Positions 1,682 through 29,948 are shown, numbered from the whole stretch's first letter. The stretch: 62,733 nt of DNA, filler included, from Choristocarpus tenellus KU-1152 (GCA_964200185.2; 9 parts of 9 records of this genome joined end to end with filler, not necessarily neighbours in it); one strand, 5' to 3'. A program made the numbers and translations. The notes: generated from the letters alone by a model not told the origin.

Positions 1682-4600
1682 TTGGGAGCTGATATCAGTC
1701 CAAGTACACATTCGTGCGCACACACAAGTGCATTGCGCGTACCTTTCTTTGTCATCGGTGACTTTCCCGCCAATATCAAACATAGAAACGTTGAGGAACC
1801 TCAGACCACTTTTGGTTGGCATACATCTGCAATTCAACATTACTCTCAACACCCTTGTACTTTACAGGTTTCATCTCGTCGAGTATCAATTCCTGGCAAA
1901 ATTGATGATGATTTAGTTTCACATATCACATTTGATACCGCATCTGACATTCCAGTCATTAGCTATCGTTACATGCAAGCTCATCCCACCCTTTGTTCTG
2001 CTTACATCAATTCTATACCAGATGGTGCCTCACATTTAAGAGAAGCTGGGGGAAGACCTTTGCAAGTACATGGCTTTATTTTGTTTCAATTAACCTTGGG
2101 AAATAAAACACTACCTGTTCAAGCAGTTGTTCTACCATCCCTAGGAGTTGATAAAATACTTTTGGACAACAGTATCATGGCTGCTTTTGGAGCGAAGGTG
2201 GATTGGGATAGAGAAGAAATAACATTTACTGGGAGCACAGTTCGCATCCTAGCGCCTCATAAAATTTCTCCTATACCCATTGTTAATCCACCAACCACCA
2301 GTCAAAATACTGCTCAAACCTTTGCAACAAAAATGACAGTGGCTACAGTTTCGACTGAGTTCACCATACCTGTACATGTGAGACATAAAACATATTTACC
2401 CCCGGGAACCGAAACTGTTGAATCATTGTGTTCTCAGGCCTTACCTGGCTCAGCCAAAGATGCTGTAGTGGATACCATTGTCAAGACGAGCATGGACTTC
2501 ATCAATCAGGAACAGCACCACTCTCCAAGGAACGATATCACAACCTTACCTGGATCAGCCAAAGATGCTGTAGTGGATCCCATGGTCAGGACGAGCAAAG
2601 ACTTCATCAACCAGGAACAGCACCACTCTCCATGGAAAGATATCATGGTCAGTCGGTCTTTAACTGTTTGAAAAGACGATGGATCTTGGCTAGTTAAAAT
2701 TGTCAACCCTTCCAACCATGGTGTTAAAATACCTCCTCAATTTGTTGTAGGTCATATAGCATCAGTGGATCAAATTCATATCCTTTCTGAAGCACAGACC
2801 AGTACCATATCGGCTACCCCAAACACTCCAGAGGAGCTTAAACAAGCCCGTGATGAGTTGAAAGAGGTTTTTGGTAAAAAAGCCCTGGTAGATACAGTAT
2901 TATCTGATAAGGAACAAGAAGAACTATTTGACCTTGTTTCCAAATATCGACCTGTATTTTCACTCACTTCTGAAGAACTAGGCTGTTGCAATAATACCAG
3001 TTGTTGAATTTCCACTTAAGCCAGGTACAGTCCCTGTGAACCGTCCACCATATCGGACCGCACCCAGAATACGTGAGACAATATGTAGTTGTGTGGAGGA
3101 CATGGAAAATCAGGGAATAATTCAACCCTCCTCAAGTCTTTGGGCGTCACCAGTAACCATAGTGACAAAACCTGATGGGTCTCCTCGATTTTGAGTAGAC
3201 TTTAGGCTCTCATTGAACAATAAATTGGTATGTAATTCCTGGCCGTTACCATCTATGGAAGATTCTTTGGGTACACTAGGGGGAGCAAAATACCTGTCGT
3301 GTCTCGATGTTCAGTCAGCTTACTGGCAACTACCTATCACTGACGCTAACGAACGCCAAAAAATGTCTTTGTCACACTGGATGGAAAGTACGAATTCAAA
3401 AGGCTACCCTTTGGTGTTGCTAATGCACCATGGATATATCAACGCTTCGTGTCTGAAACGTTTTCAACACTAGGACCGAGTATGGGCTTACTGATTTATC
3501 TTGATGACATTGTACTAGCCTCCCTAACGTGGAACCATCATATCCAACTTCTTGAGAGCGCATTGTCGTTACTGCAGCAAGTAGGAGTCACCCTCAAACC
3601 CTCTAAAGCCCAATTTGGCTCAAAAACAGTTCATTATTTGGGACATGAAGTCAGCCCTAGTGGTATTGCTGTGTCACCAGATCGAATCCAGGCTATTACC
3701 GCTCTGAAAGCCCCTAAATCTATAAAGGAATTACAATCCTTTCTAGGTTCCATGAACTTTGTTAGGAAATATATTCCCCATTTGGCCACAATAACTGAAC
3801 CCCTAGTGTCACTTACAAGGAAAAGTACGAAAAAAGCTGGAGAAGACAAATATATATCTCATCTATGGGGACGAACACAGCAAACTTCTTTTAATGAGTG
3901 CAAACGCCTATTAAGTATGGCGCCAGTGTTAATCTTTCCAGATTTTACTCAAGAGTTCTTTATTCACGTGGACGCTAGCGAGGTTGGCATGGGAGCTTTT
4001 TTGGCACATAAAAGTGAGGATAATAGTTTCCAAATTGTAGCCTACCATAGTGCTCTTTTTAAGCCAACCCAAAGACGATATTCAGCAACTCAGAAATAAT
4101 GTCTGGCCGTCATTCTTGCCATCACACATTAGTGCCCATATATTTAGGGAAAGCACTTTACCATTGTAAGTGATCATTCGGCTTTACATTGGTTACATAC
4201 AATGCAAGATACTTCCAATATGTTGACCAGGTGGGCCTTAGCCCTACAAGCCTTTGACTTTACAGTTTTACATAAGCCGGGACGTTTACACTACATTCCG
4301 GATATGTTATTCCGGACACGGTTGGAGGAATTTATGTTGGATGAAACACCACTTCCACTGCTCCACTGTGCCGTAATATGGGCCAAACAGAGTCGGATGT
4401 CTCCACGCCCAAGGTTTACCCTGCATATGATCTATCAGTGGATAAGCTGGGTAAAATTACCAGAGTACAAAATGATACGGAACTATTCACTAGCACCGTT
4501 AATGTTTTCGCAACAGTGGATCCTGAAGTACTATTCAAAGCTCAACAAGCTCAATATGGAGACTATTTCAAATATTTGGCTAATCCAGGAAAAGCCCTTT

Positions 4601-5984
4601 TACCAAAAAACGAAACAATGTATACCATGTCTTACTTTTTCACACAAGAAATGGAAGGCAAACAGATGGTATACAATCGTATCAACCCAGTCACCTTCGA
4701 AGAACGATAAATTCCGAGATCAATTAGTAGTACCCACTGAGATACAAGGTTTAATACTTCATGCCCTTCATGACCATAACGTCTCAGGACACCTTGCATT
4801 CAAGCACAAATTTGATTGAATTCGTGACCGCTTTTGGTGGCCCACTTTACATAAAGATATTCCAACTTGGTGTGAAACATGTCAATCATGCCAAAGCCGC
4901 AAGATAACTCCTTCTAAACCATCAAACCCTCCAGGGCATATGCCAGTAACTCGCCCATTTCAGAGAGTGGCAATCGATTTGGTAAAGTACAAAACTCAAT
5001 CAGAGAAAAATACTTATGTCTTATCTGCTGTTGACCATTTAACGAGGTTTGCTTTACTCAGTGCTATTCCTGACAAACGAGAAGCAACGGTAGCAAAAGC
5101 ATTAAGAGAACGAGTGTTTTCTATTTTTGGCGCCCCTGAAACCTTACACTCAGACCAGGGTAAGGAGTTTGAACATAAACTGATCCTAGAACTTCAAAAG
5201 ATCTACGGATACAAGAAAACAAAAACAACACCGTATTGACCTCAAGGCAATAGCATTCTTGAAAGAATTCATAAGACAATGCATGGCATGCTAGCTATGT
5301 ATTCCAACATGAAGCAATCGGATTGGGCGTCATTATTGCCTTTTGTGCAACTGGCTCACAATACCGCTTACAATACCACTGTACAAGAAACACCCTTTTA
5401 TTTAATGTTTGAGAGACGTCCCACATTACCAATCGATATCATTTTGGGAGAACCAGATGCCATGCCTATTTCTATCCAGGAGTACAGTAAACAAACAGTG
5501 GATAATTTACAACTGGCATATGAACTGACTAGACAGAATATTGGTGAGATGACTTTACGTAACGAATCCAAGGCCACTGAACACACCATTCCTATTTATG
5601 AAGTTGGTGCTGAGGTGTGGCTACACAAACCCCACACTTCGGCAGACGCTCCTAACCCTAAGTCACTGTTCCCGTGGAGAGGACCATATGAAGTAAAAAA
5701 GAGACTAACTCCGGTAGTCTACCGTGTGAAGGTGCAAGCCAACCGTCGAGAAATCACTGTGCATATAGCACGACTTAAACCACACAAAGAGGGCCACCCT
5801 CCTGAACCAGACATTGACTCTCTCGATTATTTATTTCTGGGCAGAATAATACCTGAACCAAATATAGAACAAGATGCAAGCGTTCAACCAATTTTAGGGT
5901 CATACTTTGTTGAGGGCATTGCAGACCATAAACCTGGAGTGGGTCGGAAATCCCCACATAACTATTCATACCGGCTTAGATTTA
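1682..5984 (+). mobile_element. Decayed Ty3/Gypsy LTR retrotransposon pol (protease-RT-RNaseH-integrase-chromodomain), truncated by contig end
   Basis: Gypsy domain order: protease FDTASDIPVIS (~1930), RT SPWASP-like/LDVQSAYWQ/IYLDDIV (3130-3520), RNaseH FIHVDASEVGMGAFL (~3960), integrase HHCC (HDHNVSGH...CETCQSC, 4760-4900), core IDLV/HSDQGKEF/ERIH (4970-5280), WRGPY, chromodomain start YFVEGIADHK...YSYRLRF. Several stops and frameshifts. Confidence 0.95.
2439..2645 (+). repeat. 105-bp in-frame tandem duplication in the Gypsy protease-RT spacer
   Basis: LPGSAKDAVVD...DFINQEQHHSP occurs twice; units start at 2439 and 2544. Confidence 0.95.
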
Positions 5985-6084
5985 NNNNNNNNNNNNNNNN
6001 NNNNNNNNNNNNNNNNNNNNNNNNNNNNTTAATTAATTAANNNNNNNNNNNNNNNNNNNNNNNNNNNNNNNNNNNNNNNNNNNN
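5985..6084. other. Artificial contig linker (N44-TTAATTAATTAA-N44); also at 14138-14237, 17817-17916, 29949-30048, 37312-37411, 41658-41757, 46439-46538, 56376-56475
   Basis: Eight identical 100-bp N-flanked spacers with stops in all six frames. A separate 10-N gap lies at 16800-16809. Confidence 0.99.
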
Positions 6085-9000
6085 CCAATGGCTGCACCTA
6101 CCCTTGCCTTTACCCCAAACCCATCGCTAATGCTAGTATCATTTCCTCCTCTCCCCCCCCCCCCCCCACCCCCTCCTCCATTCCGAGGGGACCCTGGCCC
6201 AGCTCCCGGTCCTTTCCCGTCTAAGGTCCCCACACCAGTCCCTCTGGATCCCCCACCAGGTCCACCCCCAACACCCATGCACCCACCCGTCTCATGTTCC
6301 CATTCTGCCAAGAACTCGCGAAGGACTTGGACCTTCGCAAATAGAATTATGTTGAGAGCATGAAGTATAGTGCGGAAGCTTAGGGAAAAGAAATGGAAAG
6401 TAGCAGGAATGCCTCTAACTAAATGCCTGGGTTTTTGTTTGGTTGTCTGTCAGACTTGATGGTTGAAATGTGTTTGTACTATGATTGAAACTGTTTGAAT
6501 ACAAGGATCTGCTCCAATGATTGAGATGGGACAGTCCCTTCTATGGCCAAAAACCAATTTGTGCCCATAGTCAGAATTTGTTGATCTGTTTGTCAATATT
6601 CCTTTGCTGATTGGTGTACTGAATTGTGTATCGCATATCCAAGCACTTGTTTTGTCTAAAATCCATTCAATGCTGCCTCATAAGCCTGGCAACCCTTCCT
6701 TCACAACTTGTATACTGAACGTAGATTAAGGCAGACAGTGGTATTTGATGTACTGGAGAGGAGAGAGGTAATAGTTGTTGTAGCCATGACAAACATACAG
6801 TGTTTGGGTGACAGAGGGGGAGGGAGGGAGGGAGGGAGAGGAGACGGGGGTGGAGAGGGGGTGTAGTTTTTCTAAACCTGTCCCTCCAGCAGTTCATATA
6901 GTGAAGGTTCTTGTGCCAAGTTGACCATGGTGCCCATGGCAAGCTGTCGGTATGTCTGCTTGTGCAGAACATGGGAGCTTGACCCAAGCAAAGGGTCGTT
7001 GGTCAGCATGCCCTGAGGGATTAGGGAATGTTACCAATAGTGAGACTCAAATGAGGGGGTTACACACTCATTGCTCTGGGTCATTTCACTCTGCTAATTG
7101 GACTTGAGCCTGGAAAATCACTCCTGCACAATAGAGCTGCCATTACTCAGCCAAGGAGTGCGAAAAGGATTGCTCACGGTTGGTTGTGTAATGTGATGAC
7201 CAACTGCTTTGTAGCTTACTTTGATTCGGCCAAAAACTTGACCGTCACTGTGATGAGCGATAAGAAGTCTGTATGGCGGATAGAAAGACAGCTGCAGGAG
7301 GACAGCCAACCACATCACACAAGCATCTCCACCTAAGTCTTCCTCGGATCTGAAGTGGCCCGTCATTGGATGCAAGAAGTGAGACAAGTACAGTAATCCT
7401 ACGTTTTCAGTGGGAGCAGGAACATCCATATATGAAAAGGAAAAATTCAACAAGCAGTGAATTCGGCTCTGATTCTTATTACCACTTTGTATCATAAGAC
7501 ACTCTGAAGTTTGACAGAGCCAAAGTATCTTAGAGGGTAGAGCCGCGTCCACTTGGGGACCAAAGATCAATGTTGCGATTTTGATATAATTTTGTCTATC
7601 GTCTTTGTTAGGAAGTGTTAATATCCATGCTCCGGACACACCTTTTCATAACGTATACATTTTACCTACTGTTAAATATTTTGGAGTAGGAAAATGTCAT
7701 TAAAAAACCCATGGGAAGCCAAGCCCCAAATAATGAACAAACAGGGAAAAACTCGTACCCTCTAAGATACTTCCACACACATTGTGAAGGAAAACCAGGA
7801 ATCATTGAAAGCACAATCCTGCACATATATTACTTTGAATTGCAATTTGCAGTCCCCTGTTATTAACTGCTGATCAGGGGTCAAACAGCGATTTGAGGAG
7901 ATATCCTGCACTGGTGTGTCTTTACCCTATACAATAAGCTTGTTGGTCCTTACCTTCCATGGCTTCCATCTTCATCTTCATCCATGACCAATGCCAGGGT
8001 CGTCATAATCGTTGCTGGATCCATCTTTGGATGGTCCAAATTCATGGTTGTCAAGTTCATCACAGTAAAAAGCACATTCCGCCTTATCAACGGACTTGCC
8101 ACCCTGGTAGGGGGTTTGGCTGCTGTACCTCCCCCAGCTCCATCACTGTAGGCCAGCCCACCTGTGCGATCTCCATGGTTCTTTCCCTTGTCCTCTCCAG
8201 CCTCACCCCTGTCAAGAATCTGTCCCCCACCAGTCGACCTGCATCCATCTCCCCCTAGACCTTGCTGATATGAAGTGAGTTCAGCTCTTTCATTTACTTC
8301 CTTCCCCATCTCTGCTTCTCTCTCTGCTCCAAACGCTTTACCAGGTAGGGGGGAAGTGAGAGCACCAGATCTGATCGTTCCAGAGACCGCTGAAGATGTT
8401 GCACCTGAAACAGCTATCACTACGGTTGGGGCTGCAGATGTTTTCACGGTGGCTGCAGCAGCATCAACTGTAGTTGCTGACTCTGCCACCTGTCGGTCCA
8501 TCTTGGACCCACCTTCAGGGCTCGAAGTCAATAGTTCGATGAGGGTAGATATAATGCCTCCCTCAAGGAGAGCTACATGGAAGGATGATTCGCATGAGAG
8601 ATTGAAGAGGGTGGTAGAGGCCAGCTCATGGACCTGCATGAATGGAGTAGATTGATGGTCTTAACATGGTGTGCTCTCAAGTACAAGAGAGATGTAGGAG
8701 TTGCCTAGTACAACTAACTGTATAGAGAGGGTTAAGAATATGAGTGAAATTTTCTTAGAGGGTACGAGTTTTGCCCTGTTTGTCCATTTGGAGCCTGGCT
8801 TCCCATGGGTTTTTTATGACATTTACCGACTCCAAATGTTTCGGAGTAGATAAAATGTTTATGCTATGAAAGGTGTGTCCAGAACGTGAATATTGACACT
8901 TCCTAACAAACACGATGGCCAAAATTACATCAAAATCGCAACATTGGATTTTGACCCCCAAGTGGACGCGACTCTAATCTCTAAGATGCTTTGGCTCATA

Positions 9001-12000
9001 TGTTTCAAGAACACACAAAACACTTGAGGACTAGCAAATAAAGCTGTTCCTTATTCTGGCGAGAGAAATATATGTGGGATTGAGTGAGTAGTGCATGAGA
9101 AACTTGTCACGGCAGATATTGATAAAATAATATACATTGAACTTTAGTGCATGCTTTGTCCTCAAGAGGCTGGTGTGACAAAGGGAAAAGAGCTAAAGTA
9201 TCTTAGAGGGTAGAGCTGCGTCCATTTGGGGGTCAAAATATAATGTTGTAATTTTGATATAATTTTGGCTATCATGTTTGTTAGGAAGTGTCAATATCTA
9301 TGTTTCAGACACACCTTTTCATAACGTATACATTTTAACTACTCCGAAACATTTTGGAGTAGGAAAATGTCATAAAAAAACCCATGGGAAGCCAAGCCCC
9401 AAATGGAAAAATAGGACAAAACTCGTATCCTCTAAGATACTTTCACTCAAAAAATATACCTCTTCAAGTGGAGAAGCTGTGACACACTTTGTGAAAGATG
9501 AGTGATGGGCACATTCCTTCTGTAGGATACTTCCGCTATATATATATATATATATATATATGAAGATAAGAAGGGGAGGGGGGGATTCATCAGGTGGACA
9601 AGGCACCTGGGCCTCATGTGCTCGACTGCAACTACAGCTTAAAATGGCTAAGAAGTCCAAAGGGATATGGCCAAGGTGGTGAGGTGTGTGTTGGATATCC
9701 TCAACTTATTGACCTTATTATTTGACATGAATAGACCTTGTATGGGTTATTGTTGGAATTATTGTGGTCTCATGTTTTGTGCGCTCTGCCTCTGCCCCTC
9801 TCCATAGGTCTTAGACAATGACTCTGACATAGCAGAGGGATTACAGAAGAGGCAAGGTTATCACAGTTCCATCTCCTAAAAAGTAGTGATCCCGAGATTG
9901 TGGTGAGATTGAAAGCAAGACAGGAAAAAAAGCAACAGCAATATCTTACAAAATAATGCTCGGGGTTGGTGATGTAGATTATTTGGGGGTGGGGAAGCGA
10001 AAGGGGAAGGATTTGGTGTGTGTGAGAGGTTCAAAAACCTAAAGTAGGGGTGAGGGGGGAAGGGAAGGTAGCTACCCATGAGATTTAGAGCATCGAATTT
10101 TCTTGCCTCAGAGGAGTAGCCATTGACAAGACTGAAGAAGTTGGGGAGGCCACTCCCAAAGACAAGCGGTGCACGCAGCTCTGGCAAGCACATTAGATTA
10201 TGCAGGGTCTTCAAGAAGTTATCCTTCACTTTGCTGGAGGCTTGCAAGAGTCTACCACCAATAATTTCCTCTAGTATCCGAGTTGAGGCGATCCATCCCT
10301 TCTCCGTGTCTTGGTTAGTGTGAGGCTCTTTCACCTGTCCCTGGTCCTGAGTAATGTTGATTTGACGAAGCTGAACCTGCCCGACTGCTACAAGGTTGCA
10401 CAAGGAAAGACTAGCATATACCTAGGTCGGGGTCAAATCCAGGGTACAGGTGGCAAGCATGGGTGGGTGTGATATTTTGTTCACCTTGTAGAAAAAAATG
10501 CCAAGTGATGTTTTTCTGGGCGAGGGGGGGGGCAGGGGGCAGGTAGGTTTCGAGTGTGTGACTAGAAATCTGGATTAAAAAAGCGGGGAGCAAGGATGAT
10601 GCAATGAATACATTGGGAGGGAAATTAGCATATAAACAGTGGACAGACAAGTGGAAACCTTACACAATACTACAGTACCACTGCTGTAGAACACATACAA
10701 TGCACATGGGTCGATTGCAAGTGCCAGTCACCTCCAGAGATGAGGACAAGGTGACAGGGAAATCAAGTATTCCTGACTCTGGCTCAAAATCTGGCAGTCT
10801 AAGCCCTGGAAGGCTGAACCACCTAGCAGCCCCTCGCTCAAAATACACTTGTCAGGTACACTAACAATCTTTCTGTTTTTTTTCTCCTTTCACTTTGCCT
10901 ACACCCCCACCTGCGTCTTGTACTCAGTGCCCTGCATGAGAAAGCCCAGTGATGTGCCAGTTTTTGTTCTCCTGATCATCTCCCTTGCAAAGGCCGGCTT
11001 CAAGCTCCACAAGCCCATCAATCTCGCACAGTGTCTCATGAGGTGTGCATCGGACCTTGAGAGCAGGACGATATCCGCCAGGGTATCCACCATATTTCTC
11101 TACGCAATCGAGTGGGCAGTGGGCCAATCACTACATTGAGGCACATGAACCAGGTATAGAGCTCTTTGGGGTGGAAGGGAGTCTACACGTAGGTGCTTTG
11201 TACCCCTCTGGTCACAAATTGTCTTACTGTAATGACAGCAAAAACTCTGTGGTTCTTGGCTGGAAGTGTGTATTCCCTTACCTGTTCCAGGGCACAGCCT
11301 GCATTCTTTTTTTATCATGCAAATGTCAATACCATCGCACATTAACAACACAAACAAGACGAAACCAAGAGGGGAAAAGACATTCAGGAAAATATATCAT
11401 AATAATAATAGTAATAGTAATAATAAAAATAATAAAATAATATAATGATGATGTTGATGATGAAAATAATAGTAGAATAATAACAATGAATATAGTAACT
11501 ATAATGATGATGTTGATGATGATGATAATGATGATAATAGTAGAATAATAACAATGATTATAGTAATTATAACAATAGTAACAGTAACAACAATAATAAG
11601 CATCTACAACTGGGAATGCGTAGCATTGGTGGAAAGGGGATACACTAAGAACCATGATCATTTCGTGTGACTGTTGAGCACTCCAGGGACAAGTTAACAT
11701 CAACTGCTTGATTTCTTTAACCAAGAGAATCAGCAGCTCTCACAAATTTCGTGCAGGAATCCTGGTTTGAAAGAAAACACTAAAAAGGTCTTTGATGAAC
11801 TTGCAGTCGCTACTTCACTCACCACCATAACCTCTGACCCATGGAAACTTGACTGCGTTGTTCCCTTAGAATCTGCCTTGTAGTTCTGCTGCTGCCCGTT
11901 GGCACCACCTTCATCCTGTCCCTTGCACTTATTCTTGTCTTCACCCTTATCACACAATTCCCCTTCACTGTATTGGTGACCGCGTGCTTCCTCTGTAAGG

Positions 12001-17499: not shown

Positions 17500-18024
17500 C
17501 TGAATGTGAGACACACACACACACACAATACACAATTGTTGCCGGAGTGCAGCAATTGGCTCAGTAGTGTGTGAGCATGGCTTTGATGTGTCAGTCAACA
17601 TAGCGACCAATCACATACATGCAGAGAGATAGAGAAAGAGATACCTCACGAATTGAAACACTTACAGCAATCACAATTTGATCCATCAGGGGTATGGGAA
17701 GTTGGATAATACCCCGATTCATACTCAAGAACTCTATGTGCCAGAACCAAATTTAAAAAAGTTATCAAGTGGCAATTTGGGCGAGAACACAACCTTTCGG
17801 GCCAAGATGGGGGGGGNNNNNNNNNNNNNNNNNNNNNNNNNNNNNNNNNNNNNNNNNNNNTTAATTAATTAANNNNNNNNNNNNNNNNNNNNNNNNNNNN
17901 NNNNNNNNNNNNNNNNGTTTGGCCTGTGTGGCGATACTGAATCCCCCCCCCAAGATTTGCGGGCATCTTTTTTACGTCTTTTCCAGACTTTCTGTGAGCA
18001 CACACACGTGACTTACAAATCAAC

Positions 18025-19330
18025 ATGAACCACGACGGTGAGACAAGGAGAGCCTCCGAGACCACTCTGCCCACTGGATCTACCCCCGGTACCTTCTCTG
18101 TCGAGAGGTGACGGAAAAGCAAGTACTATGTGTCACTCAGTGCGATGTTAGGTGACGAGAAAGTGCGAGTAGTGTGGTGCAGCAGCATGATCAATTCACG
18201 ACACTGACGATGAGAGAAGATGCATTGAAAGCATTACCACACAAACGTGATTGGGTCTTCAACCACGTCGGAGTATTGCTCTGCAGTCCCTGCCGCCTCG
18301 GGAAAGCAGGAAGAGAGTGGCGAGTCCATCACCAGGTGGTACAGTTACAAAGTTTGTAGGGAAACCTGTTCACGGCGGGCAAAGAGAGAACCGAGGTGGC
18401 CGGCCAAAGGGAAGATTGGGGAATAGAGCAGTACGACTACATGTCATTGCGCTGAGGAATCGCCTAAGTGAAAACCTGGGTGTAGAATATCTTAGTAGTC
18501 GGCAATAATAGTGGGTCCTGACTGTTTGGAAGCTGTACGATCCGGAGTGGCTTCAGGAAACAAGAAAGAAGGTGTTAGGGTTGGGCTACAAGGGCTCTAA
18601 AGTCTGAAAGAAGGTCGAAAGGGCTCGCAAGGCGGAGGAGAAACGATCATAACAAGGGCAGCTGTGGAGACTTTTCGATACCAACAAATCCTTTACTTAG
18701 AAGAGGTCGCGAAGCAGGTGGAGGTAGCCATCGACGAGGACACCAGGGAAGAAGAGGAGGTGAGATTGAGACTATTTGCACACCGGTGGTTTATTGTCTC
18801 CCACTTCTTGCAACATGCTGTGCATTCACTTTGTTCCTAGACTTGGGGTTGGACGTTATAAAGTTGATTAAGACTTTCTCCCAGCCTGCATTCATTCGAG
18901 AAATCAACACAACTTTCGATCAACTCAAGTCTGTCCTCCCTCGCCCTTGCGCCTTGATGATAAACTATCGCCCGTCCAGGAAACATGGATGACGCCCATT
19001 TCCGACGCCCAACGAGGAAATGTTACAGATAAGGCTCTAACACTGTGAATTCTGTACGTGTGTATGTATGACGGGAAAGACCGTCAAATGGCCCTCGAGA
19101 TGGCAGCAGGATATGCGATGGTCAGGTCGGAAACTGTGAGTAAATGGGAGAGAGACTTCCTAATTAAGGGTCACATCAAGTTGTTGGAGCAAGGTCGCTA
19201 TGAGACGCGTTTCTTCCTGGGCCTCGACGAGGACATCCTTGCCGAGGTCAAAGAATGGGTGCGCAAACATAGAGGAAGAAAGGGTAGGGAGGCGTTTTTC
19301 CCGTCTAAACTTTATACTTCAATCAAGTAA
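18025..19330 (+). pseudogene. Probable DNA-transposase N-terminal remnant (HTH-like region)
   Basis: 19058-19330 RSETVSKWERDFLIKGHI..EQGRY...DEDILAEVKEWVR resembles the DNA-binding region of eukaryotic DDE transposases; upstream fragments are broken by stops; no DDE core seen. Confidence 0.4.
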
Positions 19331-19919
19331 TAGTACATCTGTTCCCACTCTTGGTGACCTAGAATTCAGCTTGGCTGTAGTCTGGAGCCCCCCATCACGA
19401 ATATGGTCTTAATCTGTTAATGCCATGTCCACATCAAAGAAGTTATGATAGAATAACCATATTGGTTTTACTGTAGCAACTGATTTCAGAAGGGGTAGGA
19501 TAGTCGTAGTAGAATAGATTAATATTGGTTTGTTTTGATATTGAAGGACTGGGTCTATTTTTTGTTCTTTTGGAAGAAATTCATAGAAGAAGTCAAATTT
19601 AATATATATTTAATATTGTCGTTTAATGCAAAAAATATTATTTCAAGTACATAATAAAACTATTTTTTTCAAGTTGACAAAATTTCACACAATTGCAAGT
19701 CTTCTCTACTTTTCATCTTATTCCTTCAATTTTCGGGTAATAGGTTCCTATTCGTATGGATAGTATGTAGGATAGACTATATCTGCAAAAGGACTAGGAA
19801 TATTTTTAACCGAAGGACAATCGTTTGATCCTCTGTACCTACATAGATGTCCAAGCGTGAGAGTGTTCCTGTATATATCTACAGGGGATCTCCACCAATA
19901 TACCAACCAGCGAACCGCA

Positions 19920-22900
19920 ATGAACACTCGACCCTACGTAAGGCCGCGATCTCGAATTTCAGGTCATCATAGGCCTACTGATACCCGCGTTCATGATTCG
20001 TCAATGCACCATGAGAGAACATTATCCTCAGTGGAGGTTCAGATCGAGAACCTCATTCTTTGGCTACAGCCTTCTCGTCAGGCAGAGGAACGGCGACAGT
20101 GAGTCTCTTGATGGGAGTGCAACCTCTAAATTCCTTTGTGGGCATTGACCATCTCCCAGTATTTCGCCTTGCCTCTGATGGTCTGTTCCCTTCTTGCGTC
20201 TAGTGGTTTGTTCCCTTCTTGCCTCAACGTCCAAGCAATTCTCTATTACAGATTCCACTCTCTTGTATGGGGATCAAAGTATCACTGTTCGATTAGAGGC
20301 GTAGGAAACGTGCGCTTGTTCTGACTACATTTTATTGCAATTTGTTTAAACTCCATTCTCATTTACAGGGCGGTTTTCGACCATGTTCGGACCATTGTGC
20401 GGGAGCAAATTCCATCTTGTGAGGTGTTTCCTGTAGGCTCATTCCCGCTCAAGTCTTACTTGCCTTGTTCGGATGTAGATATGGTGATGTTCATACCCAC
20501 CTCAGGGTCAGACGGCGAGGGGAGCTCATCTGAGCGAGGTGGAGAGGCCTTGGGTCGGACTGAGATGCCGTGGGCATGTACGACCGATAGGAGTGATGGA
20601 CTGTTGGAGGTTAACCAGGCATTATGCAGGGCATCTCTTCAGAGAGGCATGGATCGGGGAGACAGCAACATGGGTAGGATACACGGAGCAGAGGGTAGCC
20701 CTGGCGACCAGCGGGGACTAGAGATTCGAAATGTCTCGTTTGTGAATGCTCGAACGCCTATGGTAACGATGCGGGTGGGAAACATTGTTGTTGATCTGAC
20801 GGAAAATCAATTGGGGAGCATAGCTGCAGCTGCCCTGTTAGAGGAGGCGGATAAGCTCATCAGGCATGGTCACCTCTTCAAGCGCAGCATCCTTCTGCTC
20901 AAAACTTGGATGCTCTGCGAAGCCCCACGCCTTGTGGGTCAACGAGTATTTGGTGGAAAGGATAGTGGGCTCACAAGCTATGCTCTCTCCATCTTAGTCC
21001 TGCTTCTGTTCCAATCCGCAGAAGTAGCAAAGACACTCCAACACCCTGTTGACGTATTGCTCCGTTTTTTCCGAGTCTACTCAACTGTGGACTGGGAGCG
21101 AACGTGCTTCACATTCAGTGGGCCGTTATCGATGGATGAATCGGGGCACATGAGTTCTTCAAATCGCACAAGATCACGCAAGTCCCGGCTGTGGCGCCTC
21201 GTCAACCGGGTGCGAGCACAAGCGTGCCATGGGGAGAAAATAGTGAAGGGATGGCGGGGTAGGGGCCCTTACGATGAAGATGGTGAATCAAAGTCAAAGA
21301 AGTGTTTGAGGCGTGATAGTTGTGATGAGGTGAAGTTCCCGCTTCGATTTTGCAATGTCCAGGATCCGCTCAATCCTCTCAACAATCTGGGGCATTCTGT
21401 GAGTCATCGGACCCTAAAGGCTCTGCAGTGTGCCCTTAGCAAAGGGCGACATCACCTTGAGTATATTGTTGCAGGTTGCGCCATGCCTATTGCACAGTCA
21501 TCACCTGTGACAGAACAGACGGTACAAATCAGTGAGGATGGACTGTTGGCCACAGGCAGGGGAGCACAGACTGATGAGTCACATGGTGGTGGAAATGATG
21601 ATGTTGTGGCTCATCAGGCAGGTAGGGGGGGGTTCCCTGTTTATGGATACTGGTCATCTGCTGGTTGGCTAGATGATGGGCAAGCAGAAGTGATTGGGGC
21701 AAAACCAATCACCAGCTTGCTGCCAATGGTCCCCATGGAGATGATGAACCCTTTTCCCCCACACCCCACAACCCACCAGCAGATGCCTATGCACCATGGT
21801 ATCGTTATGAATACTCTGTGTCTGTCTGCTGTGAAGCCTCTTCTGCTGGCTCAGGACCCTGACTGGCTGCATCCGCATCAAACTTTGCAAGTCCCCTACA
21901 TGTTTCATCCGCATGGTGCACCACATATCCTCTTCCCAATGTTGGACCACCAACAAGTGCTTACGTATCCTCCTCCAGTTGACCCAACCCATGGATGGGG
22001 TACTTGGGAGATTGAGGAGTCCCAGTGGCAGGGGGGGGAATGGGGACAGACTACCTATAGTAGAGTTGGGGTTGGTGTGCCACAGCACGAGGACACAGAG
22101 CTGGATGAGCATGGAAATGGTCAAGAGGATGAGCCTATTGATGAAAGGACTGAGGAGATAGTGAATGAGGTGATGACGGATGGGGGGGTAGGTGGGCAGG
22201 AGCATAAGGAAGAAAAGAAGGAAAAGGTACCCATATCCCTACCAGAGCATCAAGGAGGGGAGGGGGATGACAAGCAATCATTGAGCACATCTACAATCTC
22301 CGTAACAGAATCATGGGATGATTGCAAAAAGGACCACCCAAACCATTCTGCAAGGAAGGAAGCTTGTGAAGAGGTCCCTCATTTGGGTAGAGATGATGAG
22401 AGGAAAAGTGGATCCCCTCCCACAGAATGGGTCAAAAATGAGGGAGGGAGTGGGGGAGAATGGTTCTTGCATGCGTTCTTTCCAGAGACCTTCCGTCGCT
22501 GGACTTCAGGAGATGGCTTCCGTGAAGATCTTCTAGACCATCCATGCCAACAGTGGAGTATGCTGCAGTCTACAACTCGGCAAGACAATTATTTTCTCAA
22601 GGGTAGGGGCAATAAGCTGTACTCTGCTTTGCATTGTGCAATGACTATTTCTGGCAGGACTGAAGTGGCAGAGGACCGCCTTCAAGAGCCGAGTTTGCAT
22701 CCTGAGAACAGTGAGGGTGAGCAGTCCTTTGAAGAGGGGTGTGTATTGGCCGGTCCCTCCAGAGGCAAGGGGAGCTTAGATGGCAATGCAATGGGCAAGA
22801 TTGGGGAAAGTATGGGTCAGAATCAAGGTCCAACACAGGTTGAAGGTGTGGGTGAGGGTATGGGTACAGATAGAGGAAAGGCAAGGCTAGCCACGGAAGG

Positions 22901-25900
22901 TTTGGAGGCAAGCCAGTCAGACGCAGGAGCCTTATTAGAAGGGTGTGAATCCAGTCTTGCTGCTCCTGATGGTGAGGTGAGCTTGGTGTTACTTACCACT
23001 ATATGCAAGCGTGCGTGAAAAGTAGTTTTCACAACCAATTGCCTTACTGTATTATCTGGAGTTTATGAGATGCTTAAGCCAGAAGAAAAAGTGTCAATTA
23101 TGTCTTCAAAATGCTTTTTCAAGAGTAAGCTGATTGACTCTGTGTTGCTCTGTAGCACTCTAGCTGTAACTGTATTAGTGAAGTAGGTTCCAGGCATATT
23201 GCTCTAAACAAGTATGCTCCACTAAAATCAAATAGAGAAGTTGGACCAGGTGCAGTTTGTATATTGGTTTCTCTAACCTTGACTCCAATGCCTGGTGTAA
23301 GCAGGTGCTGTACTTTGCAACAGTGTGAAGCAGTCAAGTACACTGACTAAGCCAACTGTGCAACATCCATGAAAACCTTACAAATATATCCACCTTGTTT
23401 GATTTAAAACTTACTCGTACTCTGAACGCCTTCCTGAGATTTTATCTGATACAAGGTGGATAGCCTCAAAACAGTTGGTTTGATCTTACTTGGGTTATGA
23501 TTTTCCTATAAATATTGACAGAAACTTGATGTTTGATTGCCCATTGCCGTACCGAGACCCTTGCTTTTGACTGCCCTCCCTGTGAATGATGAAGTATGAG
23601 ATTGGTGCTTGACAACAGATAGCCTCTATCCAGGAGGTCAACAGGAAATATAGGTAGAGACTACCAGTGTGAGCTTCATCGTTGTACAGGCGTATCATTG
23701 TGATGGGGTCTCAGATGAGCCGGTTGTCACTCTCTCAGATAGATGTTGCCAGCAGATAAAATGTGGATCAATTACCATGTTGGCAACTTACTGTGGTCAC
23801 ACCCTCTTCGGCCAAAAGGATAGTAAGAGTTTTGCTTTCAGGCACCCTTAAAAGATTATTTTAACGTTTGTTTCTTTTTTTTGTTTTTTTTTTGTTCCTG
23901 ATTTTTTTATTTTCTCGTTTGTTATACTCTTGATGCTTCATACATGGATGTTGATGGGGAAAAATTGATATCATTTTGGACTGGTGAGGACTGGATTTGA
24001 GGTCCTCGTATTTCGTAGTGGTTTTGCTCTCTCTTGATAATACTGTAAGGGAAAGAGGTATGTCAGATATGTGCCACTGCTAAAGCTAGAACCCAATTTA
24101 AATCTTCTATGTTCTCGTCCAGGTGGTCCCTCTTGCTTTGGAAGTTTGTAGTGCAGGAGAGATTGCCAGCCAGGCCTGTGGTACAGGAACTATGCCCAAG
24201 CCTGTTTCAACATTGGTACAGACCTGCTCTGTCACAACTGGCCCTCCAACTTTGTTTGGAAGTGAGGGTCAACTTGCTTGGCCTCCTTTGTCGTCCTCAG
24301 GAGGACATGTCAAGGGTGGCAGACCTAGAGCGTGTGAGGTAGGATCAATAGGCAGTGAGTGCAGATGCATCGGGCCAGGTGGGACTGTGTCTCCAGGACA
24401 ATACCAGCAGGCATCAGGCATGGGTCAAGGTCGTCTCCATTTGGCATGGGTTAATAATAGAGGGAGAATGGCTACCACAGAGCCAGGAAGCACCCTTTTG
24501 AATGCTCAACAGTGTCAGCACCAGAAGGTTGTGGGACAAAGCTCTATCTTGAGTTCAGTAGGTGATTCAGGGTTAGAGGTACCACCAGTCCAACCATCCT
24601 CGTCTGTTGACCTTGAGATCTCCATTAATAGCACCACTCAGGTGTGGAATGGGGGTTCATGGGAGGATTGTTTTCCAGTTGCAGTCCAGTCAGTCCAGTC
24701 CAGCAGTGTCGTCGAGCAAAATATGGAGGCATTACCTCCATCAGGGGGTGTGAAATCTACCGAGTTGATGGCTGATGCTGCTCCTGTAGATGAGGTAGTG
24801 GCGGCAAGCATGCCTATTGAGGTTGTGCAGTTCCACCAGTCTGAAGACTTGAATCGTCATGCCCCAACAAAGGCTGCTGGGGCAACTAGCAGAAATAGAG
24901 TTGTTGAAGTGGGAGGGGATGGGAAGAACATTGTGTTGGTATCATCCAAGGCATCAGTCATAGTTGAAGAGTGGGGGGTAATGGCTCATGTTGATGTTCC
25001 TGAATGTGAGCCCAAGGGGGATGAGCTCAATGTGATTTCATTGCAAGAGCGAGGTGTACCAGAAGACTTGGCAGTTTCAAAAGCAACCTCTTGGACTCCT
25101 GATGACCCTGCCCTCTGTAAGGGACGTTCAGCGATCGGGTTGGAAGGCGTTGGCAATGACAGTGTGGATGTTATGAACAACAAGGAATGCAAAGTTGTGT
25201 GCATCCCACTGGGTGGTGCAACCGCATGGGGTGTGATAAGTGCTGGGGATACCATCGGGAACAAGAACAAAAAAGCCAGGGACCAGGGGAACACAGTACT
25301 GTCAACTCGTCTGCTACAGAATGTTGGTGAGGAGGAGCTGAGTCCAGCACTGAGCTGGGTGACTAGAGGTGATGCTCTTAGCATGGGGAATGACAGTGCC
25401 TCTCTTGATGGAGATGGGTTGTCATTGGGTAGCTGCTTTCAATGGATGAAGGATGGTGCAATCATCCCAGGGGCCATCAGGTAGGAGACATTTAGGTCAC
25501 CGCCCACCTTTTTGCTTATTCTGTGTTTTGTGAGTTTTTATTTTCCATTTTTTCAAAGCATGTTTGTTGTCCTATGGTATACCAACCCCCCCCCTTCACC
25601 TGGTGTGTGCTCATCAAATTCATACGAATTTTTTGAGATATAGTGTTCAGATCTAGATTCAAAGGGGTTTTTTTCTTTTTTTTTTGGGACTGGACGACTT
25701 GAGTCCTAGTGGTCGCTCACGGCTCACAGATACCCTTCCCTTGGTGCTTCTGCCCTATACCCTCCATCCTCACCCCCAACAAAATTTACCAGATCAAGAT
25801 ATTCTATCTCTAATGTTTCATTGAAGGATGAAGGAACCTACACATGCCACATCACTACAATCGGGAAAGAGACGAACGAAACGTCTCTGTGGGCAGAGGT

Positions 25901-27311
25901 AATTCTTATTTTTATTTCAAGGGATCTGAGGATGTTGGAGCCCGTCTCTCATTTTTGTGATGTGAGGGATAAGATAATACCTGGAAAGTAATAATAAAAA
26001 TAATTCGATCACCCTCTTTGATTTCCATTTTGTTGGGCTTGTTAGAATAGCTCTGATCTTGATATATTTTGTCGGCTGCATTGGACATAGGGGGTCCTCC
26101 ACCTCCCCTCTTGTTTGCTGTTCTTTAGAAAGGGTCCAAGGCTTCCTACCAAAAACGTCTGAATACTGATGTCAGAAAGTGATTTTCCTGCATGATCAAC
26201 TCGGTCACAGTTGCTGCTCTTTCCTCTTTCAGGCCTTATTACGAATCAGTGAGCCCCCTGTAGTGGAAAGTCAATCACTCATGCAACGGGTGATACTGGG
26301 TGAGACCCTGGCGATAAGCTTCACTGCAAAAGGAATTCCCCAGCCCAAGTACCAGTGGTGCAGAGATGGAGTACCCATCCCTGGAGCGACAGAGCAGACA
26401 TTCCTGTGCTACAGAGCTACAGAAAGTGATATGGGAACATACACCTGTGATGTGAGTATCAACTGAAGGCCTTTTTGAGGGAATGGATATGTGGTAAATT
26501 ATAACTTAATACTTTTTTTTTAGTGCCATCCATTTTATCTCTCCTTGTGAAGCGTTTCAAGATGCAGGAAGGCCTCTAGTGAACAGTGTGTAGCAGGAAA
26601 CCCAAATATTTTGGTTTTTGTTTGACATGTTTATACTTCCTCAAGTTCCTTAAAAGAGCCAGTGCCATCATGGCAGTCCCAAATTAAACCAATGACTTAA
26701 ATATTGGTACTGTTTTGGGTAAGATGCTTTTTTTTTTTTAAGAATGCTTGACAGGTCCAAAGCTACATACACGTTGGAAGTGTTGCCAATGCAGGCGCAG
26801 AAGAGTTTCGACCTTGATAGAAAAGGGGGCTGCTTTGATTATGGGTGCTTACAGCTGAAGGCGATCATGCATGGCTGCTCATTAATTGGTCAATTCAAGT
26901 GCAAGTCACTGTTGTGCATTTCTTGTTCCACCAATGATAAGACACAGTACCCACAGGCAGTGTACTCTTCCTCCCTGTCATAGGCCCAAATTTCCTTCAT
27001 GTGTTTTTCATACAGGTTGATACCCTTGGTTATCAACACCCTTACTTACGTAAGCGGGGCCATGAGAAAATTGACAAAGAGCCCTGCTCTGTTTGCTCCC
27101 ATCTGGTACCCATCAGATCAAGATATCTGGAGTGTTGCTAGTTTTCTCATGTTTTTTTTCTTCTGTTCCTTGTCTGTCTTTGTTGTATGGGTGTGTGTGA
27201 TAAGTCCAGGTGAGTAACGTGGCTGGATGGGCACGGTGGGAAAAGATGTCAGTGGTTATGCAGGACAGACCTGGTATGCCCCACAGCAAGGCACATGCAC
27301 AAGGTCCATAG
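19920..27311 (+). CDS. Non-canonical poly(A) polymerase/terminal nucleotidyltransferase (NTase + PAP/OAS1-type substrate-binding domain) fused to two C-terminal Ig I-set-like domains. Exons 19920-20098, 20369-22976, 24123-25480, 25793-25898, 26233-26451, 27210-27311 (~1523 aa)
   Basis: LQPSRQAEERRQ|AVFDHVRTIV; GSFPLKSYLPCSDVD; VVDLT; HLFKRSILLLKTW..CEA; LTSYAL; NVQDPLNPLNNLGHSV. Ig motifs FQWMKDG...DEGTYTC and GIPQPKYQWCRDG...SDMGTYTCD|VSNVAG. All junctions are GT-AG with matching phases; total 4572 nt. The true start may be further upstream (possible acceptor at ~19884). Confidence 0.8.
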
Positions 27312-29082
27312 TAGCTATGGTTTTGCTGCTGTTGTGAGAAGGGAGACACGCCTTGGGTTCATCTTTTTGGGGGTTTTATGTCTGGAGCGATTTATTTCAT
27401 GTGTTTTTGCATGTCGTTTGGAAGTGCCCTTTTTTCATGTCCACATTCATATACTTTAAGCTGCCCTGTATTCATCTAGAGTCCCTGTTATTTGATATCA
27501 GGTTTTCAAGTCATGTCTCCATCTCTGTTTCTTAATTTTAGGATTTAGGTGTACGCGGCCCTTTTTGAAGAAAATGTGAACTCTTGAATATGCTTTACTA
27601 ATTATCTTGGTCAGTGGGTGTACCATACCGGTTTAGGTATTCATAGGGTTAAGGTTAGGGGAGGGATTGCATTGAAGAAGATGACACATGGACTGTTCTG
27701 TGCTCTTTTTTGAGTTTATATTTGTCTTGGTGGCAAGATATGTCACTTTACTGTGATTATTTTGGGCTGGGTAGCCTATTTACCTGCAACAGCTTGATAT
27801 TGTACGATTTTAGAGCTAGTTAGGTTCCAAGTGTATGTATGGCAAGGACAATAGGCCTTGAAACTGCACTAATGCTGAAGTTTATGCAGTTTTTATATAC
27901 TAGTGATTTCATAGCTATCATTTGTGTTTCATTAGCATCAATGGCTTGCGTGAGCTGATTGTATTGATATGTTTATCCCTGAGCAGCCTGTTTTCATGTC
28001 CATGATGATCATCGTTGCCAACTTTGACCAGGGACAAGAAAGGTTGTTGCAACCCAAAATAATTCCAACCCTTCATACAGTGCAATGATTGGGCTATGCA
28101 ATGACCTGGGCTCCTTGTGCACAAGGATGAGCGGAATTTTGTACTGGTAGGATCACAGGAGACATTGACATTGACTATATGCAGCAATGGGAACGAATTA
28201 TTTGACAATTGGCTACCTACTTTAGTGGTGTGTCTTGGCCGTATATAATGCCGTTTGTTATAATGAGATATGTTGACACGGCAACAATTACTGTGGTTGT
28301 CTCCTCCACCACAATAGTGAACAGCTCAGGATGGAGTTTGGACGGTAGGGTCTGGTGTTGCAGATTGTATGTACACGCAACATTTATGATACAGCTATAG
28401 TTGTAGCTCCATTTGATGCTGTGGTATGCTACGTTGTACGGGTGAAGTTTGGTTTTTGATTATTTTTTTATTTTGACATCACGGTTACGGTGGTTGTTTA
28501 GATTTTTGTGTGACGTTTCAAACTGTGTTTCTAGTACCCAACACAGTAGTTGAAGATGACTAATTCTCTTACTACTTCAGTACTATTGGTGCAGTTGAGC
28601 TTTAGGGACCCGATTTAGAGCAGGGTCCTACAATCTTTTTCTTTCAATACACAGACTTTGTACAATATGAAAGTAGAATATAGCAGTTACATCACTGGAT
28701 GTGGTTTTGTGCTTTACGGCAGTAGCATCAATCACTACTGGATGGCCCGTTCATGGTACAAGAATGGGTCTGGACATCATGGTACACTTGGGGATTTATG
28801 ACGACGGTTATCCGTGGTTTTCTGTTGTCTTCTTGGCTACAAACAGGACAGAACATGTTTCCAACGCAAAGATTGTGGTACAGGCCAAGTGGGAAAATAC
28901 AACCTATTTTTCAGGAGTGTGTTAAAGACGCTGTTGTTCCCCAAGACTGGTTGGTATATGCAAATGGTTCATTTCTTCTGATATTGACAGGGTGTACATG
29001 AAGCAAGGAGAAAGGAGGCGTGAGTCTTTGAGTCACAGGGGGATGTCCTTGTCACCAAATCAATAATTTCTGTGGATCACTT

Positions 29083-29369
29083 GAGTGAAAGTATCTTAGA
29101 GGGGGTACGAGTTTTGCCCTGTTTGTCCCTTTGGTGCTTGGCTTCCCGCGGGTTTTTTATGACATTTTCCTACTCCGAAATTGGGTTAGGAATAGGGTAC
29201 AAAATGTTTCGGAATAGGTAAAACGTGTACGTTCTGAAAAGTTGTGTCCGAAACAAGCATATTGACACTCCCTAACAATCACGATAGCCAGTGTTACATG
29301 CAAATCGCAACATTGAATTGTGACCTCCAAACAAACGGACGTGGTTCTACCCTCAAGATACTTTGACTC
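29083..29369 (-). mobile_element. MITE family A copy, TSD ACTT/ACCT
   Basis: ACTT|GAGTGAAAGTATCTTAGAGGG...CAAGATACTTTGACTC|ACCT. Confidence 0.88.
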
Positions 29370-29927
29370 ACCTACCAACAATCGTCACAGAGCACCTGCT
29401 ACAATGTTTCCTGTTCCTGAACTCTGCCAGATTCTAGTTCATTAACTCGTCTTTACGTCCTTTTCTTCAGGAAACAATCTTCTCTCTCAACTGATTGTTA
29501 CTTACATAATCTGGTCTTACGCAATTAGAATTAAAAGCATGTTCTTGATACACTCCCCTACATCATACTCCTAACAATAAAGTATGACCTCATTCCCTCT
29601 TAAACGTACCGCCAACACAAAAAAATCAGTCTCACTTCATCCTATGCATGATAACGCTTCAGTGCCTACCGAATTATTCCTCTGACACCCTTCGTAAAAC
29701 GATCTTCATGTTGGAGCTTCTTAGGTAAATACTGGAGTATGCAATTGTATTCTTCCCTCCCACTCTGACTGGCATACATAGTAGTATTGAATGTTTACAT
29801 GCTTTGTCTCTCCTCTGCATACAGCCAGCCTTCTGAGCAATCTTCATTGCACCACTGATATCCTCTAACACTGGTACAGTGTGATCTTTGTGAAGTGGTT
29901 GCATGAACAGGTCTAGTGGAAGATTAA

Positions 29928-29948
29928 GGGTCAAAGTATCTGGGGGGG
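29928..29948 (+). mobile_element. MITE family B left end, cut by contig break
   Basis: GGGTCAAAGTATCTGGGGGGG directly before the linker. Confidence 0.8.

Follow-up and report, generated by a model that had tools for sequence, protein, structure and literature searches.

A six-exon brown-algal gene joins a predicted terminal RNA nucleotidyltransferase to two immunoglobulin domains, with a candidate membrane span between them

Introduction

Terminal nucleotidyltransferases (TENTs) are known as soluble enzymes whose partner proteins bring them to their target RNAs. How does such an enzyme come to share a chain with immunoglobulin (Ig) domains, and on which side of a membrane, if any, would those domains lie? 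The question is raised by positions 19920-27311 of a 62,733-nucleotide stretch of DNA, called the window here, which a first-pass annotation made from the sequence alone had read as a nucleotidyltransferase (NTase) fused to two intracellular Ig domains. All coordinates below are window positions; the piece that holds the locus, 17917-29948, is contig CAXNAD020002018.1 (12,032 bp) of assembly GCA_964200185.2, from the brown alga Choristocarpus tenellus. Judged by its gene model and its relatives, the locus is one gene for an enzyme of the TENT class with two C-terminal Ig domains. For the family as a whole, we see an even chance that a single membrane-spanning helix separates the two.

Results

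One gene carries the enzyme and the Ig domains

The piece is eukaryotic, with long + strand open frames broken up by AT-richer stretches. Six exons on the + strand, listed below, all have GT/AG borders, pyrimidine-rich acceptors and phases in register, and they splice into 4,572 nt with one terminal stop only. The 1,523-residue product agrees at every residue with a public "unnamed protein product", CAM9340290.1 (P0042), on which the full-protein analyses were run, exons being searched one at a time. An exhaustive protein search with the NTase domain of the window likewise returned P0042 at 100% identity, the match starting at residue 61. The public annotation places a single gene at 2004-9395 of the contig, which is the same 19920-27311 span as in the first-pass annotation.

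19920..20098, + strand: exon 1, 59 codons plus 2 nt, with the start codon and the beginning of the NTase N-terminal helix; GT donor at 20099; residues 2-61 of Discosporangium P0001 align to 19926-20105
20369..22976, + strand: exon 2, NTase core with its PAP/OAS1-type helical domain (about 20370-21479), followed by low-complexity linker; orthologues 45-61% identical over the core
22977..24122, + strand: intron 2, phase 0, whose splicing joins the two halves in this genome, placed by its borders and its shared position
24123..25480, + strand: exon 3, linker, hydrophobic segment, stalk and Ig1 strands A-C' (from about 25353); a 452-codon open frame whose 3' third is colinear with orthologues
25793..25898, + strand: exon 4, Ig1 strands D-G including the G-T-Y-T-C motif; colinear with orthologues, the same exon in Discosporangium
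26233..26451, + strand: exon 5, Ig2 strands A-F; Ig_3/I-set matches, 50-61% identical to orthologues
27210..27311, + strand: exon 6, Ig2 strand G, a short tail and the stop codon at 27309-27311; completes Y-T-C-D / V-S-N-V-A-G across the intron

In this genome the union of the two halves hangs on intron 2, which is about 1.1 kb long, in phase 0 and bordered by GTGAGC...CAG. Were it retained, the protein would end at the stop codon at 23016-23018, in frame 14 codons past the donor. Two adjacent genes, an NTase gene ending at that stop and a separate Ig gene, could on this account have been falsely merged, and the length of the intron together with the early stop on read-through would fit such an error. 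Exon 3, however, has no upstream start and opens directly at a strong acceptor site. Moreover, the order of the parts and the positions of the introns are conserved across brown algae. Orthologues of 1,420-1,542 residues from Discosporangium, Scytosiphon, Sphacelaria, four Ectocarpus species, Ascophyllum and Laminaria (partial), eight of them full-length, are colinear with exons 1 and 2, the 3' end of exon 3 and exons 4 and 5, and the complete ones carry Ig Pfam matches and the NTase on one chain. The Discosporangium gene (L003) also has six exons, with all five introns at aligned positions; the Ectocarpus gene has lost only the last intron and holds Ig2 in one exon (L002:9903-10196), and the position of intron 2 is common to all three. 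In a tree of NTase domains the C. tenellus sequence is sister to that of Discosporangium (support 99/97), and the remaining branches match the brown-algal orders.

Among distant relatives, uninterrupted open reading frames (ORFs) that run from NTase through transmembrane (TM)-like segment to Ig were found at L001, at L004 and on a contig of GCA_041443025.1, in three other organisms. P0032 (905 residues) carries all three parts in one uninterrupted ORF on a 3,048-nt JGI contig with ends resembling untranslated regions, P0047 (875 residues) joins NTase and Ig without interruption on a 3,016-nt contig of SRR14578344, and P0049 (697 residues) does so as a single 2,094-nt gene on a 3.3-kb NCBI contig (GCA_041443025.1). 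A local hidden Markov model (HMM) of the Ig pair, combined with Pfam, added P0069, P0101, P0051, P0057, P0048 and the chrysophyte protein P0144. In P0032, P0047 and P0049 the fusion does not depend on inferred splicing. Together with the colinear orthologues and the shared introns, their uninterrupted frames make a false merger of two genes very unlikely, close to negligible. On these comparisons, 19920-27311 is one six-exon gene joining an NTase and two Ig domains. The single gene and the phase-matched GT-AG introns of the first-pass annotation are thus borne out, and the joined domains recur in brown-algal orthologues, in a chrysophyte and in other assemblies.

The N-terminal module is of the TENT type

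Three short elements mark the active site of the enzyme, and their conservation was read from A1, an alignment of 36 NTase relatives.

20436..20441, + strand: G-S of the helix-turn NTase motif (P0042 G83-S84); near-invariant G23 and S24 in A1
20472..20480, + strand: D-V-D metal-binding carboxylates (P0042 D95 and D97), codons GAT GTA GAT; near-invariant D35 and D37 in A1
20793..20795, + strand: third catalytic Asp (P0042 D202, in V-V-D-L-T); invariant D142, 36/36 sequences of A1

Across distant lineages the helical domain also keeps K171, S173, K178, T202 and Y204 (A1 numbering) invariant or nearly so. We take these to be the NTP-binding residues of Cid1-type enzymes, and the conserved G-L-T-S-Y motif that contains T202 and Y204 is typical of TENTs. 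The MTPAP-like palm (PF22600, MTPAP-like_central) scored 38.4 bits on P0042, above its cut-off of 27. A precomputed match to PF26180 (PAP-OAS1) exists for the gene and for all its relatives; the local Pfam scan did not return this model. The intact Pol-beta NTase with GS, DVD and a third Asp, followed by a PAP/OAS1-type helical domain, was therefore correctly recognized in the first pass.

The same fold serves more than one chemistry, and an enzyme like OAS, cGAS or the CD-NTases would make a 2'-5' or cyclic oligonucleotide messenger, with activation via the Ig pair, instead of tailing RNA. The layout, like that of a receptor, would fit a role in signalling. To compare the structures, we used an AlphaFold2 (AF2) model of residues 61-430, whose mean predicted local distance difference test (pLDDT) score is 61.5, with 70-90 in the core and disordered insertions. 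The top 49 Foldseek matches are exclusively RNA TENTs or poly(A) polymerases, led by MEAT1, Trf4, GLD-2, URT1, TUT7 and Cid1. VIA-align places TENTs at ranks 1-14, including GLD-2 (Z 13.2, root-mean-square deviation (rmsd) 3.5 over 202 residues), TUT7 (Z 12.9), TbTUT4 and TUT1. CdnE, OAS2 and OAS1 follow at Z 11.1-11.5, in keeping with the common Pol-beta/PAP-OAS1 fold, and cGAS at 8.3, all under the TENTs. Identity to the module is 17-22% for TENTs versus 12-16% for the OAS/CD-NTase group. At the sequence level, a profile search of solved structures with the enzyme part gave Trf4 and URT1, in line with the MTPAP-like match and the G-L-T-S-Y motif, and P0042 has no OAS1_C or Mab-21 Pfam match (E up to 0.001).

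Because TENTs come first in both sequence and structure comparisons, we file the module as a TENT. By sequence and model, the N-terminal 440 residues are a terminal RNA nucleotidyltransferase of the non-canonical poly(A)/(U)/(C) polymerase type with its catalytic residues intact, and the C. tenellus protein is predicted to add nucleotides to RNA 3' ends without a template. OAS-like chemistry is compatible with the fold alone and is not favoured; we regard a second-messenger enzyme as improbable. Of the two activities proposed in the first-pass annotation, RNA tailing and nucleotide signalling, it is accordingly the former that the ranks and the Pfam results favour. The antiviral sensing that it also raised is speculative.

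Highly improbable, in our view, is a pseudoenzyme or pure scaffold that works by binding alone. Such a role would agree with a chain dominated by large disordered regions and binding modules, but the three carboxylates, the G-S pair and the Lys, Ser and Tyr positions presumed to bind NTP hardly vary, if at all, even between distant lineages.

A conserved island lies in the disordered linker

The enzyme core is linked to the Ig pair by about 850 residues of low-complexity sequence, the long linker that the first pass had described. The equivalent linker of P0032 is disordered in its AF2 model (pLDDT <50 over residues 405-713). About 330 residues past the NTase module, this linker is broken by a conserved island.

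22455..22622, + strand: conserved linker island (P0042 756-811), placed by orthologues and a local HMM

The island has the motif FFP..Y.sGDG[FW]R.DLL.HP.Q.W and is present in every brown-algal orthologue and, by a local HMM of its own, in 74 NTase relatives, Ig-bearing or Ig-less; it had no Pfam match and no usable Atlas match. Since it is present regardless of the Ig domains, the island belongs to the enzyme family and not to the Ig addition. Judging from its conservation, it may be an unrecognized module of the TENT family that lies hundreds of residues past the catalytic core.

The C-terminus holds two Ig domains without the canonical disulfide

Exon 5 by itself matches Ig_3 (E 2.8e-10) and I-set (E 7e-7). 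On the full spliced protein, P0042, Ig2 exceeds the cut-offs of Ig_3 (56.3 bits, cut-off 30), Ig_2 (49.9, cut-off 27) and I-set (41.6, cut-off 23.7), and Ig1 yields just weaker ig and V-set stretches at 1383-1409 that are clearer in relatives. The intron within Ig1 follows strand C', and the one within Ig2 precedes strand G. In an alignment of 15 fusion proteins both domains keep the C-strand Trp and the F-strand G-x-Y-x-C. The B-strand Cys is absent from both in 15/15, replaced by G or D in Ig1 and by F, V, I or L in Ig2, so the canonical B-F disulfide cannot form. This is a common variation and no bar to membership of the Ig superfamily.

For the structural comparison we used the chain of the relative P0032, not the split exons of the window; AF2 folds it into two Ig sandwiches with pLDDT 85-95. 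The closest solved structure is Ig2 of MALT1 (3bfo; Z 14.1, rmsd 1.4 Å, 85/85 residues, 28% identity), next the MALT1 tandem (3k0w; Z 13.9; identities to MALT1 25-28%), then CD22, MuSK, titin and Robo at Z 11-12.5, with MLCK Ig domains also ranking high. From Pfam matches, conserved residues and this model, the C-terminus is a pair of I-set/Ig_3 domains lacking the canonical disulfide, which upholds the two I-set-like domains of the first pass. Its choice of MALT1 for comparison was apt as well, within limits: MALT1 is soluble and cytosolic, the likeness is confined to the Ig domains and does not extend to the whole protein, and no death domain or caspase-like domain was matched by Pfam on P0042, which thus falls outside the MALT1-type paracaspases.

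The presence of classical-looking I-set/Ig_3 domains in stramenopiles raises the question of whether they were inherited, arose convergently or were transferred. Ig2 (26233-26451) aligns almost gaplessly over the full domain, at about 43 bits each, with repeats of 9ncf_S ('Immunoglobulin-like domain protein') and 9c2d_S ('tail protein'). These share the Y-Q-W...G-A-T...G-x-Y-T-C pattern and lack the B-strand Cys, and differ in forming arrays of 3-4 repeats on virion proteins. The single-domain sequence score of the MALT1 Ig domains is 38.7-47 bits. As phage or bacterial repeats (about 43 bits per repeat) and animal I-set domains (47 bits for MALT1 Ig2) score alike per domain, no origin can be inferred, and we rejected a phage or bacterial source as a conclusion. 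A word search with the P0032 Ig tandem returned two unrelated multi-Ig proteins only and also missed the brown-algal orthologues, which makes it uninformative on origin; an Atlas search with the Ig pair returned generic animal Ig clusters only.

A hydrophobic segment separates the enzyme from the Ig pair

Every fusion protein has a hydrophobic stretch between the two halves, about 36 residues upstream of Ig1 in C. tenellus and 14-55 in most relatives. We scored it by the Kyte-Doolittle 19-residue mean (KD19), for which the classical TM threshold is 1.6.

25188..25247, + strand: degraded homologue of the TM-like segment (P0042 1285-1304); KD19 1.41, positional homology by BLASTP

In 13/13 other full-length fusion proteins tested, no 19-mer anywhere in the chain is more hydrophobic than this segment; P0042 is the exception, its top 19-mer lying at residue 261 within the NTase domain. 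KD19 reaches 2.4-3.0 in the distant fusions P0101, P0057, P0049, P0051 and P0047, and 2.0-2.9 in P0069, P0048 and P0144, where the segment lies farther upstream of the Ig pair. Among the brown algae, Ectocarpus, Scytosiphon and Sphacelaria have 2.1-2.2, Ascophyllum and Laminaria 1.7-1.9 and Discosporangium 1.66. P0032 has 1.63. The segment is thus of membrane grade in distant relatives and marginal in most brown algae. BLASTP identifies the C. tenellus segment as the positional homologue of that of Discosporangium. Among representatives of at least 600 residues, KD19 is at least 2.0 in 9/12 Ig-bearing and 13/115 Ig-less relatives (Fisher p of about 5e-6, a value inflated by ignoring relatedness among the sequences).

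These patterns, read from sequence, suggest a family of TENTs that the segment tethers to a membrane as one spanning helix, with the Ig pair on the non-cytosolic side; we hold this at about even confidence. All N-termini are hydrophilic, and the first-pass finding of no signal peptide holds. A TM-like segment between NTase and Ig, at the level of the family and without a signal peptide, would put enzyme and Ig pair on opposite sides of a membrane. The label 'intracellular' given earlier to the Ig domains becomes doubtful for this reason, with KD19 of up to 3.0 between NTase and Ig in the fusion relatives. The accompanying statement that no TM segment was visible is accurate for the window, where the segment stays below threshold, but it missed the homology to a TM-grade segment in relatives.

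Several observations weigh against a membrane span. In C. tenellus the best 19-mer upstream of the Ig pair is this same segment, short of 1.6 at KD19 1.41; it contains a Pro and four Gly, and its apparent insertion energy, a rough figure, is about +6 kcal/mol. In addition to the inflated Fisher value, the flanks show a weak positive-inside bias (38 versus 29 Lys plus Arg), and AF2 confidence for the hydrophobic helix of P0032 is low. The Ig pair lacks the B-strand Cys in every lineage, and cytosolic Ig domains (MALT1, titin) are among its best structural matches. We considered an annotation or frameshift artefact behind the weak C. tenellus segment and rejected it, as the segment aligns in frame with that of Discosporangium and lies within one exon in both species.

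The same observations make up the case for a soluble cytosolic RNA-tailing enzyme, in which the two Ig domains would be intracellular interaction scaffolds as in MALT1 and the hydrophobic segment, at least in Choristocarpus, a buried or amphipathic helix without a span. The sub-threshold segment, a canonical disulfide found in no lineage, cytosolic MALT1 Ig2 and tandem as best structural matches with titin and MLCK also high, and the want of a signal peptide all fit such a protein. It accounts poorly for a homologous segment that reaches KD19 2.4-3.0 in distant fusions and 2.1-2.2 in Ectocarpus, Scytosiphon and Sphacelaria, that always stands between enzyme and Ig pair, and whose family includes Ig-less relatives that look tail-anchored (below). 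Nor does the missing disulfide speak for the cytosol alone, given that bacterial and phage Ig repeats lack it too and yet function outside cells. We consider a soluble enzyme possible, though doubtful as an account of the family.

The Choristocarpus segment is degraded and that of Discosporangium weak, yet the Ig pair downstream is well conserved. Since its anchor has lost much of its hydrophobicity, the Choristocarpus copy may be weakly tethered or untethered.

Several of the 13 Ig-less proteins with KD19 of at least 2.0 carry the segment within about 20-70 residues of the C-terminus. In the Ig-less proteins P0054, P0065, P0067, P0086, P0125 and P0060, the sole strongly hydrophobic segment is at the extreme C-terminus, and from their sequences these relatives look tail-anchored. 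The Ig-less Dinobryon relative P0034 has an N-terminal PX domain instead. One enzyme family would thus appear to use three different membrane-targeting devices: an Ig-linked span, a tail anchor and a PX domain.

A membrane-tethered TENT as a working model

In the C. tenellus protein the order of parts is the NTase module (440 residues), the island, the long disordered linker, the short hydrophobic segment, a 36-residue stalk and the two Ig domains. In a membrane-tethered TENT of this kind, the enzyme would reside in the cytosol or nucleoplasm and add untemplated nucleotides to the 3' ends of RNAs at a particular membrane. On the lumenal or extracellular side, the Ig pair could serve in retention, partner binding or ligand sensing. 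The comparisons show the gene model, the identity of the domains, the catalytic residues, the conserved fusion and the hydrophobic segment; insertion into a membrane, topology, RNA substrate and Ig function are inferred.

A stronger version would make the protein a receptor-type nucleotidyltransferase, with the Ig pair a true ectodomain whose binding of a ligand or partner controls the cytosolic NTase across the membrane. Its layout would be that of a receptor kinase, its output RNA tailing or a nucleotide signal, and it would be conserved across photosynthetic stramenopiles. We think this unlikely, and our searches found no described counterpart in any kingdom.

Discussion

How does the protein compare with known TENTs? 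NTP6, NTP7 and NTP8 are probably plant members of the same Pfam family. The plant NTP2/NTP6/NTP7/NTP8 clade resembles the C. tenellus protein in the kind of enzyme module, with its PAP/OAS1 substrate-binding domain, and in the catalytic motifs; the latter protein adds the disordered linker of about 850 residues, the TM-like segment and two Ig domains. A review describes no plant members with Ig domains or a membrane span, and reports that NTP6 and NTP7 cytidylate pre-miRNAs and that NTP8 is found in processing bodies with UPF1 (PMC13030794).

The closest solved catalytic structures are GLD-2/TENT2, TUT4/7, TUT1, Trf4, Cid1, URT1 and the trypanosome TUTases (Z 11.6-13.2 over 185-206 residues, Foldseek probability 1.0). 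The animal, fungal and trypanosome TENTs nevertheless differ, being only 14-22% identical. None is known to have a membrane span or Ig domains; what accompanies their catalytic part is zinc knuckles, RNA-recognition motifs or partner proteins. The nearest functional analogue is animal TENT5 (FAM46), which is brought to the endoplasmic reticulum by the single-pass FN3 proteins FNDC3A/B and there tails mRNAs of secreted proteins (PMC13291444). Enzyme and anchor are separate proteins in that system, whereas here they are predicted to be one chain; no sequence relationship between the TENT5/FNDC3 system and the C. tenellus protein was found.

We found no paper on a stramenopile NTase-Ig protein, on brown-algal Ig domains or on a membrane-spanning TENT in a literature search with most subscription journals outside its coverage, and the brown-algal genome paper never mentions the words immunoglobulin and nucleotidyltransferase. 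The earlier suggestion of an undescribed architecture therefore stands as regards the literature. It does not as regards databases, which already list the proteins as uncharacterized, unnamed models with Pfam matches assigned automatically. As these are public, the gene is not new, and the value of the present analysis lies in recognition and characterization: the architecture is an unrecognized variant of a known enzyme class. If the membrane-tethered reading is true, a TENT with its own membrane span and Ig pair, present from chrysophytes to kelps, would amount to built-in confinement of RNA 3' tailing to one membrane, and tailing could be coupled to events across that membrane. Ectocarpus is genetically tractable, which makes a membrane-tethered TENT testable.

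Surroundings of the gene

A Pfam search of twelve flank ORFs, an Rfam search of the entire piece and a tandem-repeat scan revealed no neighbouring gene or RNA. Within intron 1, a 25-bp tandem repeat of 2.3 copies occupies 20168-20225. The first 1.5 kb of the contig (17917-19400) is ORF-rich on the + strand with 47-52% GC, and has no publicly annotated gene and no Pfam or Rfam match; a degraded element may lie here, or else an unannotated exon belonging to a gene that leaves the contig. After it, immediately 5' of the start codon, sits a stretch of 32% GC (19417-19916).

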